NCBI GenBank assembly: GCA_016748015.1
Contig: JAAOMT010000267.1
Span: 1 to 16,221, forward strand
From: Geosiphon pyriformis uo1
Taxonomy: Eukaryota > Fungi > Glomeromycota
DNA: 16,221 nt
Direction: 5' to 3'
Part shown: piece after piece, positions 1 through 14,852 of the stretch
Layout: every line of letters begins with the position of its first letter
Numbering within the stretch: the stretch's first letter is position 1
Notes under the pieces: generated by a model
Told to the model about the DNA's origin: nothing
Database searches by the model: none
The model's input: the letters and a program-made list of their open reading frames with translations, nothing else
Position numbers and translations under genes: made by a program

Positions 1-389
1 CCTAACCCTAACCCTAACTCTATCCCTATCCCTATCCCTATCCCTATCCCTATCCCTAACCCTATCCCTATCCCTAACCCTAACCCTAACCCTAACCCTA
101 ACCCTAACCCTAACCCTAACCCTAACCCTAACCCTAACCCTAACCCTAACCCTAACCCTAACCCTAACCCTAACCCTAACCCTAACCCTATCCCTAACCC
201 TAACCCTAACCCTATCCCTATCCCTAACCCTAACCCTATCCCTAACCCTAACCCTAACCCTATCCCTATCCCTATCCCTATCCCTATCCCTATCCCTATC
301 CCTATCCCTATAAATATCCCTATCCCTATCCCTATCCCTATAAATATCCCTATAAATATCCCTATCCCTATAAATATCCCTATCTCTAA
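1..389 (+). repeat. Telomeric hexamer array (C-strand), mixed CCCTAA/CCCTAT with in-phase AAATAT variants
   Basis: Unbroken 6-bp phase from base 1 to about 389. Hand count: 31 CCCTAA, about 29 CCCTAT (one is CTCTAT), 4 AAATAT (312, 342, 354, 372) and a final CTCTAA. A C-rich strand at the 5' start is the orientation of a left chromosome end. Confidence 0.96.
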
Positions 390-390
390 T

Positions 391-1576
391 CTCTTATCTT
401 CTACTATAACCAAGTTGCAAGCTGTTACTCTCACTTTGGAATGTATTCCGTCCTCTTGTTCAGTGCTCTTGTTTTTTGACAGTGTAGCTACTATTAATGC
501 ATGTGTCTTTGAGTTGTCATCTGGAATTCCAGATTTCAACAACTGGTATTGGGTCAAGCATAGGCATGTTTTTAATTTGATTAGAGATAAGGATCTTAGT
601 GTAAGTTGGGCCAAAGTCAAGAGTCATGCTGGTGTTCCTAGTAATGTAAAAGCTGACAGATTTGCAGATGAGACTGCTGGCTCTTTCTATGTTTTACTAG
701 TGAGAGTCCGTGAAAGTTTTTTAATGGCTAAAAATACTGTGGTCTCAGACAATGCTTGTTATTTCGTCAGGAATTTTTTTAGGTCTATTTGTCACGCTCG
801 TTGGAAAGCTAGTCCAAACCATAATGTGGTCTCTGTTGACATGTTGTGGGATTTTGATTGGGTTGCTTCTGTGAGGATCTGGCATCCTGATTCACATATG
901 CTTACTGGGTTTACCAGCCAAAAATTAGCAGATCTTCATACATATTTAATAAAGACTTTGCATAGAAGGTTGCCGGTAGCAGTCAGGAAAAAATTGTATG
1001 ATAGATATTATCCAGGTGTTTAATGCTTATTGTGTGGGAAGGTGGAATTGCCCGACCATAATTTTTCTTATTTACAAGATGCTCACACTCATGAGGAGAT
1101 TCTATTAGAGGCTTCCACACGTTAGATTTTTTTGGTTAACATTTGTGACCTGTCTTCTTCTTCTGTTTTTCTGTTTTTCTGGTTCTTAATTCTTGCCTTT
1201 TAGATGTTGGCAGATATTCGGTTTTGTATAAGGAATTTGTAATGAAGAGTTAGTGTGCTAAAGTGGCTGGTATTTTCGATAATGTTAAGAAAACTTCCTG
1301 TATAGTTATTGATTGTGTAAGATTCTTGGTTAAGTTGTATCATTCTAGGGTGTAGTTGGTTAGATCTAAGTTTAGGTTGGACATAGAGAAAGCTGGCTTG
1401 GTCAGTAACAATAGCTTGATGTCGGGTCTATCATGTGATATGTTTTTTGTGCTTTCTGACAGTGTGGTTAAGTTGCTTAGTATCGCTGAGTCTTTTGCTA
1501 TCGGTTTTGGTCATCACAGGCCTTGCTTTTTTTTTCAGGTTGGGATAGTAGTTTTTGTGTTCGTGTTGATACATAG
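391..1576 (+). pseudogene. Retrotransposon ORF2 remnant: RNase H domain + C-terminal zinc knuckle region
   Basis: The frame of ORF 415..1023 extends upstream as LLSSTITKLQA (RNase H SST.AEL.A helix, E>K). It contains FFDS and KVKSHAGVPSNVKADRFA (VKGH.G..GNE.AD motif). After the TAA at 1021 it reads CLLCGKVELPDHNFSY (C-x2-C-x7-H-x3-C with the last C>Y). It continues through stops and frameshifts into ORF 1356..1604, with the likely true stop at 1574-1576 after a T-run frameshift. Confidence 0.9.
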
Positions 1577-1711
1577 TGTTGCTTTGTTTGGCCTGAATGG
1601 CTAGCCACATATAGAAAATGTGTGAGTCACATTTAGTTTGAACCATTTAGTCTGGCTCTATGTATTAGATAGTGGTTGGGCTTCACTCATTAAACAGTTA
1701 ATAAAAAAAAA
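391..1711 (+). mobile_element. 5'-truncated non-LTR (LINE-like) retrotransposon with RNase H; 3' end with AATAAA and short poly(A)
   Basis: Degenerate ORF2 C-terminus at 391-1576, then a ~125-bp 3' UTR ending in AATAAA (1700-1705) that runs into A9 (1703-1711). Composition switches abruptly to extremely AT-rich DNA after it. Confidence 0.88.
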
Positions 1712-2315
1712 TATATATATAAATATGTTTAAAATAAAAAATTAAATAAGTATTTAAATACAAAATTGTTAAATACTTAAATAAAATAAAAAAAAATAGT
1801 TTTTTTAATTTATATAGCTTAATATAAGTTTAAATTACTGGTTATATATAAAAAATGTGTAAGTAATATTTTTGATGCATATTTTAAGTTTTAATTAATT
1901 TATATTTAATTCATACATAAAAATAAGATTATTAAATTTGTTTTATTTACAAATTAAAATATATAAGCATTTATTTTTTAAGTTTAAATTAATATAAAAT
2001 TACATATATATATACAAAATAATAATAAAAATATATTTATTACTGGTTTAATTTTTTCTAATTTTAAAACTTTCAATTATTTTTATTTTAAAATAATAAA
2101 ACAAATTTTATTCAATATTAAAATATATAAAACAATAATAATGTTAATTTAACAAAACAAAATAACTTAATGAATATTTCACAATACAATAATTATTAAA
2201 AAAACAATTATATTATATAGGCATATAACAGAGAGTAAAAACTTTGATTATTGTTATAATTTAAATAGTAAATTTATACTGATTTAAAACGTGATTGACA
2301 CAAACCAAATATATA

Positions 2316-2684
2316 TTAGGCCATATCTTCCCAATTTATAACAAATACACAAAACACCATGGCTAATGTCAACAAAATTGATGTTACCGGAGGTTTTTGG
2401 TCTCTTTTCTTAAATGTTGTTAATGTTGATTTGTTGTGAATTTATGTTTCCAGGAAGTAGTTGAATCTCCAATAACTGAATTTATCTTCAAATTATCTCC
2501 TATAATTTGAACTTGCTAGACTTATGAGTGGAATAGCCAATTCCATGCCAGTTGCTTTATGTAGTTATGTTGTAGTAAATGTCAACTCTTTCTCAGGAAT
2601 TGCTCATCTGGAAGCTCACTAAAAATGTGTAGTTACTTTGCTGTGAAAGTCAACTCTTTTACAGGAATCTTGTCTGTAGGCTAC
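2316..2684 (-). pseudogene. Possible degenerate last exon of an unidentified gene with a hydrophobic C-terminal tail
   Basis: GC-richer island. The minus strand reads ...IPEKELTFTTT*LHKATGMELAIPLISLASSNYRR*FEDKFSYWRFNYFLET*...PPVTSILLTLAMVFCVFVINWEDMA*. It is preceded on the minus strand by a pyrimidine tract (2700-2740) and an AG at 2685-2686. No family recognised. Confidence 0.3.
2560..2668. repeat. 41-bp direct repeat, 2 copies (2560-2600, 2628-2668)
   Basis: tgtagttatgttgtagtaaatgtcaactctttctcaggaat vs tgtagttactttgctgtgaaagtcaactcttttacaggaat, 33/41 identical by hand alignment. Confidence 0.85.
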
Positions 2685-3037
2685 CTTAATAATTGTAATA
2701 AGAAAAGAAAAGAAATATAAAAGAAATATAAAAGAAATAGGATTTTATCAAAGAAAACGTTTTTCTATTCAGGCCTGAAGTCACTAACAGTTTACTGAAA
2801 TTGGTAGCTAATCAATTTCGAAATGTTAGTTGGGTTTTAGAGGTTTTTCCAAGTACAATAATTAAAGAATTTGGTTTTTCGAATTATTTGATATTTATTT
2901 CTTTTTTTGGTATGTATAGGAATGGTTTTAAAAAATAAATCTAAAGTAAGATACATTTTCTCAAAGGGAAATGCTCTTCTTTTATATAACTTGTCATAAC
3001 ACTATTCTATGAACTTGAACTTTGCTATTTTCTACAA

Positions 3038-3150
3038 TTTTGCTGAACTAAAGATATATTTTAGCAAACTACAAGTTATTTCTGCAAACTATTAGATATT
3101 TCGATGAACTATCAATTATTTCGGCGAATTTTTACAAATTTTGGCAAACT
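3038..3150 (+). repeat. Six-copy, 20-bp-periodic array of a 12-bp motif (consensus TTTCGGCGAACT) with variable 8-9-bp spacers
   Basis: Cores: ttttgctgaact (3038), ttttagcaaact (3059), tttctgcaaact (3079), tttcgatgaact (3099), tttcggcgaatt (3119), ttttggcaaact (3139). Confidence 0.85.
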
Positions 3151-3389
3151 TTTGAATGTTACATAGTTCAGGGTATTGCATGATTTGATCATCACAATTA
3201 GGTTACATTTGTGTTGTGTACAAATTGGGTTATTAATTAAATGATAATTTTGGACATTTTGTTAATATAATAAGTAATAATTTGAAATGATAATATATGC
3301 TAATTAATAATAAAATTTATAAGATAATTTCATGCTAAATAATATCTCTAATTTCGTCTAGTAACATTGAACATTAATTAAAGGTGGCT

Positions 3390-5113
3390 ATGACTAAGTA
3401 TAGAAGATGCATAAAAGAGCTGGAGGAGAAAGGTAAGAAGCTGGGTGAAAAAGAAGTTGAGTTACATGACTTGAAAAAGAATTTGAGACAGAGGAAGTAC
3501 AAAAACAAAAACAAAAAAAATTGCTGAATAGAAGATATACAAAAGCTAAAAGATAAATTGAAGGAGCTAAAAGTAGAAAAGAACAAGTTAAAAGTAGAAA
3601 AAAACAAGTGGAAAGTGCAAATGCAAAAATTACAAAATATGTTGATAGAAGAAACAACTAAGACAGATAACTTGGGCGTTAGGAAATAGAGTAGGATAAA
3701 AAAGTACTTTCTTTGGGAAAATAGAGTAGTGTGTACATAGGGTAAAATAGACATAGTAATGTGGTTTTCTATATTGTAGATTTATTACTAACTGGAGTTA
3801 CTTTTCTAGTTAAAATCAGCTTAGAAGAGCTGTCATCTATACTACCATCTGTAACATATTCTTCAACAGGTGTTATATTGAAGACCACTACGAAAGTTGA
3901 TGGTGACCTACTGACAAGTGTACTGCTTTGGGATAACTTTCTTGAGGAAGTGAACCAATTCCATTTCAATCAACAACTGAGATTTAAGAGACTGCAATTT
4001 GCTAAAAATAGAGAGATGTCTAATGAAGAAAATGTTTGTGATGCCTTGAATGCCAACATTTGTACAGTGGTAAATAGGCTTATGTCATCAGAAGATTATA
4101 AGTTCACAAGGCTTTAAACTCATGCTCTTGGTATATCAGACTTCAATTGTTTTCTTGGAAAATTATTAATATTAGTAATTGAAGTTAAAAGAAAGTGTGT
4201 GTTAGAAGATATTGGTGGAAGAACATTTTCTGAGTTTTATCAGGATAATAACAAGACAAAAATGATAGTCCAACAAATCTACAATTATATGGGAGCAAAT
4301 GAGTGTAGATATAGTATTATAACTACCTACAATAATTACTGGTTTCTACGCCGAGAGCACACAATGCTTTGGATCTCAGAAACTTTTTCACTACAATCAA
4401 AATCTCCACTAGTGCTTAAGGTATATGCTTATTTGGCTCAACAAGCAAAGAATAATTTTGAATCCCTTAATCTATCTTCTACCCAATCAGCAAATCAACA
4501 ATTGACTACCAGCACATCTATATATCAACAATTATCTAATGCTTTTGACAAGCTATATAATTTTGCTTTTACAGATTTTAAGTTCATGAATATACTAGGT
4601 CAAGGCCGAAGTAGTAAAATGCTTTTATGCGAATTTTACAGTGAAATAATTGCTTTAAAGACTGTCGACTTGGCAAAAGTATCACCATATGTTCTGGAAG
4701 AAATACAAAAAGAAATAGAGATCTATGAAAGTTTTGCTAATATCCAGGGACAATATATTTCGAAATTGGTTTGTCATGGATATTATAGAAGAGAAATGTG
4801 CTTCATTATTGAATTGACTATTGTTGGTACCCTATTGGATAAGCACAAAATAACGAAACAACAAAATTCAAGAGCTCTTAAGGCATTAGAAACTATCTAC
4901 AAGCATAACATTCTCCAAAATAACATTTGGAAGGAAAATATTTTAGTTGATGATAGTGGAGACATATATTTGATAGATTTTGGAATAGCAAGTCAGGCAG
5001 ACACAAAAAAGAAGTGAAAGCTTTTTGAGGAAAAACAGATGAAATTATCTTGTTTACTAGATAAATATACAGTCATGCCTCCACAGTTGCCCTGTCAGTT
5101 CCTAGGAATCTGA
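3390..5113 (+). pseudogene. Crinkler-type pseudogene: coiled-coil header exon + PD-(D/E)xK (REase-like) domain + C-terminal protein kinase-like domain
   Basis: Exon 1 (~3390-3666) is a K/E-rich heptad coiled coil with TGA at 3525. A phase-1 intron at 3667-3809 has an ACTAAC branch site and TTTTCTAG acceptor, and its donor appears mutated GT>AT. ORFs 3761..4117 and 4199..5017 share one frame across the TAA at 4115. Motifs: SDFNC...LVIEVKRK...QQIYNYM...YSIITTYNNYWFL (REase) and LGQGRSS, IALK, QNNIWKENIL (decayed HxDxxxxN), LIDFG (kinase). Reading through the TGA at 5015 reaches a stop at 5111-5113. Confidence 0.85.
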
Positions 5114-13341: not shown

Positions 13342-14852
13342 ATGATTTTAACATTATCAATTGAAAATACAACTTCATCTTTCGACTGGCTTGAAGAAGT
13401 ATTCATTGTCATCAAAGAAAGTTGTCAAAAAAATATTTTTTCACAAGTTGCAGATTTAGTGAAAAAATATCTTGAGCACAATAAGAAAATGCTCAATAAA
13501 CTATACCTTGCTTGGCTTTTCCATAGAACATGGGATTGGAACTATTCCCGATTCAATAAAAGCATTTTCAGAATTTCAAAACAGCAGAGGCGGGTAATAC
13601 AGATGCACAATACAATCTTGGACTTTGTTATGGTAATGGGTGAGGACCAACAAAAAATTCAGAAAAAGCATTTGAACCATATTCAAAAGCAGCAGAGGGG
13701 GGTAATACAAATGCACACATCAATCTTAGGAGCTATTATTTAAATAGAGAAGGGACGACGAGAAATGAGGAAAGGCGTTTGAACTCTATTAAAAAGCAGC
13801 AGAGGCGTGTAATACAAATTCACAACTATATCTCGCATTTTGTTATGAAAATGGAAGGGGAACGACAAAACATGAGGAAAAAACATTTGAACTCTATTCA
13901 AAAGCAGCAGGGGTGGGAAATTTAGTTGTAAAATACAGACTTAGTGCATATTATCGAAATAGACTAAAAATAAAAAAAGACTTGGAAAAAGTGGGCAATC
14001 CAAGTCCATAAACTGATATTGGAACGTATCATCCAAATGGCTGGGAAATAAGGAAAAATTAGGAAAAAACATTTGAACTTTATTTCAAAACAGCAGAACC
14101 GAAAAATACGAGTTCACAATACAACCTTTGGATGGTTTTATCAAAATGAATGGGGAACAACAAAAGATCTAACAAAATCATTTGAGCTCTATTTAAAAGC
14201 AGACCCAAGCAAGATAAGTTACCAGAGTGATTTTCCTGATTTGAATGACCATAAACCCACTTTAAAGAATCAAGATTACCTGGAGCATTCCATTTTGCAA
14301 TTCCAAAAGCGAGTTTTTAGATGTTTAGATATTTTCAAAGGAGAATTTTTAGATCTTAAAGCTTTCTTTAACCAGCTTTCAAATGAATTCATGTGTCTTA
14401 AATGTGGCAATTTGTGTATAATTATTAGTGGATCTCCTATATGTCCATTTTGCGATACTAATGAAAGTGACAATATCTTTGAAGCGGGGTTGCCTAAATG
14501 TCCAGAATATTATAGAACATTAAAGGAACCCTTTTGGTGTCTATCTTGTGAATATTCACGATATTCAAAAGTTTGGGAACATGGAATAGTCATTAATAAG
14601 TATATAGATTATACACAGAACATTTCTGAAAGCGGCAGAGGCTACCTGGAATGGATTTCTCCCGACGAGATCAAGTCTTTAGATAAGGTGGGAGAGGGAG
14701 GATTTGGTATTGTTAAAGAATGTAGATGGACAAGAGGCAAAACTCTATTTTGGGATAAGAAAAATCAAAAGCATGGACGAAGAGGAGTGACAAAAGTTGC
14801 GTTGAAATGTCTTAAAGACAGCCAAACTATAAAATATATTAATTCAGATGAG
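13342..14852 (+). pseudogene. SEL1-repeat + Cys-rich Zn-finger-like + TKL protein kinase N-lobe, frameshifted
   Basis: Across shifting frames it reads YTLLGFSIEHGIGTIPDSIKAF, AEAGNTDAQYNLGLCYGNG*GPTKNSEKAF, AAEACNTNSQLYLAFCYENGRGTTKHEEKTFELYSKAA and GWFYQNEWGTTKDLTKSFELYLKA (SEL1 units). These are followed by CLKC..CPFC, KCPE..WCLSC, LEWI, VGEGGFGIV and VALKCL. The exon probably ends at the donor GAG|GTATTT (14852/14853). The start is uncertain and may be near the ATG at 13287. Confidence 0.88.
13500..14200 (+). repeat. SEL1-like repeat array, ~6-7 units of ~108 bp
   Basis: Recurrent catttgaactctatt.aaaagcagcagag-like segments near 13560, 13669, 13776, 13885, 14070 and 14179. One unit near 13980-14000 carries an internal deletion. 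Confidence 0.85.

Follow-up and report, generated by a model that had tools for sequence, protein, structure and literature searches.

In yeast and human, terminal deletions are healed by de novo telomere addition. The Drosophila elements HeT-A, TART and TAHRE reside mainly at chromosome ends and form head-to-tail arrays in which the poly(A) is proximal and the 5' end distal, and the TRAS/SART-type insertions of Bombyx lie within the telomere repeats. In Magnaporthe oryzae, terminal truncations, including those of truncated telomeric retrotransposons (MoTeRs), are re-capped by telomerase through chromosome healing; this de novo telomere formation is seed-primed, with 19 of 24 events extending seeds of 1-4 nt (PMC7367193). 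The MoTeRs are non-LTR elements that, like TRAS and SART, sit inside the telomere array with repeats on both sides (PMC7367193). Endonuclease-independent LINE-1 insertion at dysfunctional telomeres, for which the 3'-OH of the end serves as primer of the LINE reverse transcriptase (RT), is an established pathway in mammalian cells (Morrish et al. 2007, cited in PMC4014453).

We analyzed a 16,221-nt stretch of Geosiphon pyriformis DNA (the window, contig C22), which begins with a telomere tract fused to the interior of a LINE (non-LTR retrotransposon). The locus shares with known healing events the direct, correctly oriented repeat junction, the short G-rich seed, the loss of the distal part of the element, and the recurrence of such junctions on unrelated sequences. 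It differs from them in that the units of its tract are ordered in the manner of this genome (a single TTAGGG, next ATAGGG and ATATTTATAGGG, finally TTAGGG), that the element is an ordinary dispersed LINE and not a telomere-specific one like MoTeR, and that the event is inferred from an assembly instead of having been watched. Our preferred explanation, to which we assign a probability of about 0.8, is that an old internal LINE was broken or eroded and the resulting end healed by telomerase.

As in HeT-A, TART and TAHRE, the poly(A) of the window's LINE points toward the centromere and its truncated 5' end toward the tip. In contrast to those arrays, it is a single copy without head-to-tail repetition, its end is capped by telomerase repeats, its family is mainly interior, the terminal copy is old and dead, and another end shows the opposite polarity. 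Like TRAS, SART and MoTeR, it is a non-LTR element beside telomere repeats; however, these are present on its 5' side only, with no telomere units after position 1711, and the family is not telomere-specific.

The telomere tract, its junction and the truncated LINE

Positions 1-389 constitute a telomere tract with its C-rich strand on the plus strand, which we parsed as 60 units of the types CCCTAA, CCCTAT and CCCTATAAATAT. CCCTAA is found mainly at 1-262, and CCCTAT and CCCTATAAATAT mainly at 263-383; the same three-unit make-up occurs at other contig ends. Only two units of the tract carry T at a C position, namely CTCTAT (18-23) and the junction unit CTCTAA (384-389; TTAGAG on the G strand). 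Most abrupt ends begin their tract with one TTAGGG-type unit, to which CTCTAA corresponds, and the matching position is TTAGGG, TTAGAG or TTAGGA in L033, L035, L038, L041, L042, L044, L045, L059, L062, L067, and L069.

Alignment with 14 family copies placed the start of LINE homology at 391 (ctcttatcttctactat...), while upstream of this point the family copies go on as ...gtttgtggc|ctcttatcttctactat.... Base 390 is ambiguous: on the plus strand it is T in the window where the LINE family has C, so the boundary falls at either 389/390 or 390/391, and the T may be a decayed LINE base. Read on the G strand, the junction is ...GATAAGAG[A]|TTAGAG|ATAGGG|ATATTTATAGGG. Since the LINE family has G at the position in brackets, the original junction was probably ...GG|TTAGGG, the commonest type. 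With the family state at 390, the seed reads ...GAGG|TTAG.., and if this base is LINE-derived, the healed 3' end would be ...GATAAGAGG, finishing in a GG seed. The C strand has 8 C versus 2 G in the 30 nt that directly follow the junction. Correctly oriented repeats are fused straight to nontelomeric sequence at the start of the assembled contig, the arrangement that de novo addition produces and that the first-pass annotation had described as telomere repeats joined directly to a LINE.

Such a junction could also arise if telomeric reads had been misjoined to an interior LINE copy during assembly or scaffolding. In favor of this, the contig measures only 16 kb, N gaps occur in several other telomere tracts of the assembly, and, when Logan contigs of the source run were compared with window positions 264-3200, none covered 362-453, which includes the junction. 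On the other hand, the assembly has no N gap near the junction, and the Logan contigs, although short, matched the window with zero differences over 454-1682. The window's LINE is effectively unique sequence, its divergence from any other copy being 15% or more, and its junction follows the pattern seen at ~20 other ends, which is not expected from a random misjoin. We therefore regard an artefact as most unlikely.

The LINE copy extends over 391-1711 on the plus strand, as delineated by homology to genomic copies and by tblastn, and comprises a remainder of RNase H, the C-terminal region of ORF2, a 3' untranslated region and a short poly(A). Frame 1 is open over 391-1020 (210 codons), and residues 9-95 of this frame match Pfam RNase_H (E 5.9e-6; 27 bits versus a cut-off of 25.8). 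The match, at 415-675, covers profile positions 47-139 of 141, so that the N-terminal third of the domain is absent. In an intact relative (L016, with a 508-aa ORF), RNase_H occupies residues 229-360, and the window joins this protein at residue 266, that is, ~37 residues into the domain. The element was thus cut inside RNase H, as had been claimed from the sequence at first reading, and retains the 3' 1.3 kb of the family. In the rest of the coding part (1021-1566), stop codons interrupt the frame at 1021 and 1123, the reading frame shifts near 1170, and the shifted frame contains additional stops, while relatives keep the frame open to approximately the equivalent of 1566. The heavy decay noted earlier for this copy is therefore real from 1021 to ~1566.

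More than 1,338 first-look candidates came from a genome search with 391-1711; of the genomic copies, at least 29 span the whole query (1-1321), all ending at 1319-1321. The window copy is 84-85% identical to the five nearest full-span copies and 71-75% identical to the others; copies were compared with each other only. In all aligned copies, the family terminus ...CTCATTAAA.. is followed by a run of ~6-21 unbroken A bases and then by unrelated AT-rich sequence. The window ends in the same way, with ...CTCATTAAACAGTTAATA plus A9 (1700-1711, plus strand), where AATAAA overlaps the A9 tail in a normal family 3' terminus. Beyond it lies an AT-rich flank (1712-2330, ~20% GC) that contains no telomere units and resembles the flanks of internal copies. 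Both the colinear run of the element to AATAAA/A9 and the lack of telomere repeats behind the tail, as initially annotated, thus held in comparison with the genomic copies. On the basis of homology and the common 3' end, 391-1711 is classified as a 5'-truncated copy of a LINE.

The upstream parts of family copies show 55% amino acid homology to a sequence in L051 overlapping an ORF that matches Pfam RVT_1 (E 8.5e-7) at 29.3 bits, slightly below the cut-off of 29.6. RNase_H comes after the RVT_1 region in the same ORF, and no LTR-like direct repeats were found at the ends of any aligned copy. Endonuclease-like motifs (GGNFN and ...HFDTDH) were read by eye in minus-strand pieces of L051; Pfam gave no match on the endonuclease-like pieces, including those of L051, all of which are short. 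Relatives with ~60% amino acid identity in open frames of 1,300-1,578 aa lie at C515:29575-31092, C710:498488-500005, C667:717893-719410 and C729:61360-62877; their matched parts have between zero and two stops. Judging from these frames, certain LINE lineages of this genome may still be intact.

The 3' terminus bears on a different origin, which the first-pass annotation had offered beside a break in an old LINE healed de novo. Reverse transcription of the LINE would have started at its poly(A) from the 3'-OH of a broken or uncapped end and stopped in RNase H, and telomerase would then have capped the product, a course resembling that of HeT-A/TART or of endonuclease-independent LINE-1 insertion at telomeres. 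The polarity fits this proposal, with the poly(A) proximal and the truncated 5' end distal, and so does the presence in some related lineages of open frames up to ~1,578 aa. However, endonuclease-independent LINE-1 joins telomere repeats or a deprotected end (Morrish et al. 2007, cited in PMC4014453), whereas telomere units are absent proximal to the window's poly(A), and the 3' junction is indistinguishable from those of interior copies. Nor does the 16-kb window hold an array, since no other LINE-like sequence was found in it.

Relative ages of the LINE and the telomere tract

The window copy and its five nearest interior copies form a star-like set with 84-87% pairwise identity. Private changes, ~90% of which are transitions, amount to 9.0% in the window copy as compared to 6.2-8.2% in the five interior copies. 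By this measure, the terminal copy appears as an ordinary member of an old interior burst and not as a young terminal lineage, and the divergence of terminal and internal copies thus gives no support to the telomere-associated retroelement system that had been raised as a possibility for this fungus.

We compared the decay of the LINE with that of the adjoining tract. In the window copy, 18.2% of non-CpG C/G sites are decayed. In the telomere tract, the change affects 2 of 180 C positions overall and, among the 20 proximal units, 1 of 60 (Fisher's exact test, p = 5e-11 for the whole tract and 3e-4 for the proximal 20 units). We considered whether the decay of the LINE might be CpG specific and hence not comparable with that of telomere C, and rejected this, as CpG is almost absent and nearly all of the changes fall at non-CpG C/G. 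Telomere units of this genome do decay, since older ends carry 40-78% T at C positions proximally. The C-to-T fading of old tracts is thus an internal clock for the age of an end. Fossil tracts fading to TTCTAT and TTTTAT were seen in L032 (C37), L052 and L053 (C9 and C35), L060 (C399), and L050 (C732, to ~2183).

The LINE has decayed to the same degree as its interior relatives from one burst, and the tract hardly at all, so the cap is much younger than the LINE. This difference speaks against priming of the LINE on the chromosome end. The young tract gives no strict date for the first capping, since tracts can be renewed.

Sequences beside other chromosome ends

The genome of G. pyriformis has been described as 129 Mb in 795 scaffolds, with 29% GC and 64% repeats (PMC9453076), LTR elements accounting for 41% (PMC9453076, PMC11952901). 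The assembly that contains the window is AT-rich and comprises 128.3 Mb in 792 contigs. We listed its telomere-bearing contigs by pattern search and took the sequence beside 36 true contig ends, that is, the window plus 35 others; the census leaves out the ends of C746, C771 and C775 and odd sites in C714 and C731, and reverse ends were covered over 1.5-2.5 kb only. N gaps lie inside or just behind the tracts of L047 (C646, from 768), L031, L043, L048, L052, L054, and L065, so some subtelomere structures were scaffolded and not sequenced through. Two pairs of ends, L055 (C334)/L066 (C634) and L052 (C9)/L053 (C35), each have the same junction and 94% identical subtelomeres. They are duplicated chromosome ends or alternative haplotype contigs and do not count as independent events.

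Telomere matches were also detected away from contig ends. Apparently interstitial ones lie at C361:26535, C371:237299 and C558:73945, and the match at C629:164304 is 5.5 kb from a contig end. Further matches that are far from ends, and short or multiple, occur at C710:1011868, C714:133821 and C731:46661-47038, the last consisting of three matches in left-end orientation at 46.6-47.0 kb. Interstitial telomere sequence, or the joining of telomere-bearing contigs during scaffolding, may account for the matches far from ends.

The examined ends form an age gradient. Approximately a dozen have proximal units decayed by C-to-T changes (TTCTAT, TTTTAT), such that T occupies 32-78% of the C positions among the last 20 units. 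At the other extreme, 14 of the 35 parsed ends, the window among them, have a nearly undecayed tract (0-5%) that stops abruptly at unrelated sequence.

The window's LINE family adjoins none of the 35 other examined ends, and related LINEs (40-56% amino acid identity) adjoin 3 of the 35. Two of these have the polarity of the window but different 5' cut points: L039 (C393) is cut in RT, and L049 (C686) upstream of RT, right after an apparent endonuclease region read by eye. This variation agrees with priming on the chromosome end. The third, L051 (C778), has the opposite polarity, is 3'-truncated and is cut inside RT, a geometry that reverse transcription primed on a chromosome end cannot yield. 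The HeT-A/TART-like polarity with variable 5' truncation is thus present in three of four LINE-abutting ends, which is no different from chance (p = 0.63), and with n = 4 the comparison has no statistical power.

The frequency of LINEs at ends is likewise unremarkable. A search with the RT-RNase H region of this LINE group gave 7,104 first-look candidates in 128 Mb, from which, using candidate counts only, we estimated very roughly that LINEs make up 8-16% of the genome. Among 36 random break points, 3-6 would then be expected to hit a LINE, and 4 were observed (Poisson). The test proposed in the first-pass annotation, an excess over genome-wide density of this family beside telomere repeats in the same polarity, therefore gave a null result (4 of 36 ends with LINEs), and the recurrent telomere-associated retroelement system that it had envisaged is not borne out, with the family at 0 of 35 other ends and related LINEs at 3 of 35, in a 2:1 ratio of polarities and at a frequency matching density. 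Far from residing mainly at ends, the family is overwhelmingly interior: it adjoins 1 of 36 ends, and the >1,338 DNA and 7,104 protein candidates are interior.

Capping of the same kind is found on LTR elements and other repeats. At least seven ends adjoin Gypsy-like LTR elements at internal points (L035, L042, L062, L038, L044, L056, and L045), recognized by RVT_1, Integrase_H2C2 and dUTPase matches; their sense strand is on the C strand in six and reversed in one. Some of the remaining ends adjoin unclassified repeats, and several subtelomeric ORFs gave no Pfam matches. Two of the Gypsy-like copies, L035 (C336:1-6000, tract end ~351) and L042 (C530:1-6000, tract end ~683), are only ~65% identical, and their young caps lie within ~7 nt of one position of the element, ~230 nt upstream of the RT start. 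The agreement may be coincidental, or healing may favor this position, at which the antisense strand would offer a G-rich seed. Taking all retroelements at ends together, we also asked whether their polarity is biased. In nine of 11, the C strand is the sense strand (p = 0.065); this set includes LTR elements, which are not end-primable, and we did not retain this as a sign of end-priming. The excess can equally be explained by sense strands richer in C than in G, which would provide G-rich seeds on the extended strand.

Given the age of the copy, the identical capping of LTR elements, the reversed L051 and the unexceptional LINE frequency, priming of the window's LINE on a chromosome end followed by telomerase capping seems unlikely to us; of the two routes first put forward for this locus, the one that withstood the comparison is the break in an old LINE healed de novo. 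A broader version, in which LINE RT sometimes heals uncapped ends so that the window, C393 and C686 are relics of a HeT-A-like back-up route beside telomerase, we consider very unlikely.

The junctions themselves are stereotyped. Read on the G strand, most abrupt and intermediate junctions consist of a G, GG or GGG seed, one TTAGGG-type unit, and then ATAGGG or ATATTTATAGGG units, and the window conforms to this pattern. In the unit order of the examined ends (L031-L069), runs of TTAGGG are distal only. At least one G directly precedes the first unit in ~18 of 22 abrupt or intermediate ends, as read by eye, against a genomic G content of ~14%, and at nearly all such junctions the C strand is rich in C over the initial 30 nt on the inner side. 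The stereotyped unit order may record how telomerase initiates.

This regularity also bears on telomere capture, in which the broken LINE end would have invaded another telomere by microhomology and the tract would have been copied by break-induced replication. Break-induced replication is documented at fungal chromosome ends (PMC7367193), and the LINE sequence at the junction (TCTCTTATCTTCTACTATAACC) is loosely like decayed telomere units. However, capture would not set exactly one TTAGGG-type unit at the junction, as found at many ends on unrelated sequences, and no subtelomeric sequence was copied along with the tract. Capture is thus a most improbable source of this end.

The proposed healing scenario and other features of the window

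Under the preferred reading, the old LINE would have inserted by ordinary target-primed reverse transcription into AT-rich, chromosome-internal DNA and decayed there together with the rest of its burst. Much later, all of the chromosome distal to the point in RNase H would have been lost, by a double-strand break or by terminal erosion. The 3' end thereby exposed, in a locally purine-rich context and probably with GG at its terminus, would then have been extended by telomerase into a new telomere, with units in the order found at most other healed ends, namely, one TTAGGG-type unit, then ATAGGG and ATATTTATAGGG, and then TTAGGG. The poly(A)-proximal polarity of the LINE would be incidental. 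We infer both the break and the action of telomerase from the junction, the family membership of the copy, the relative ages and the recurrence of this junction type on unrelated sequences.

That the family is a dispersed interior repeat favors healing. Against it, neither the unbroken ancestral locus nor a second copy of this locus occurs in the assembly (the best other match is 85%), and of the four ends that adjoin LINEs, three show the HeT-A-like polarity and the differing 5' cut points that priming on the end predicts, although four ends carry no power.

Taken alone, the window is one more example of a well-known process, a telomerase-healed end that here lies in a transposon, and it gives no support to a HeT-A-like system in fungi. 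In the census, ~14 of the 35 ends that were parsed carry a young cap set abruptly on the inside of a transposon, which suggests frequent loss and rebuilding of chromosome ends in this multinucleate fungus with its many transposons. Their junctions may record how its unusual telomerase starts a new telomere.

Farther inward, window positions 2322-3200 belong to a repeat of very high copy number: of the 4,671 Logan contigs over 264-3200, by far the most map there, and the summed Logan depth is approximately a thousandfold above that of the LINE. Part of this repeat (~2381-2900) also occurs in reversed orientation beside the telomeres of C42 (L033) and C499 (L041); a related ORF in the latter (L041:877-1596), the single ORF tested, had no Pfam match. 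A 108-bp tandem repeat of 3.2 copies occupies 13575-13921, and 4199-5014 encodes a fragment of a protein kinase domain (Pfam Pkinase, E 1e-13).
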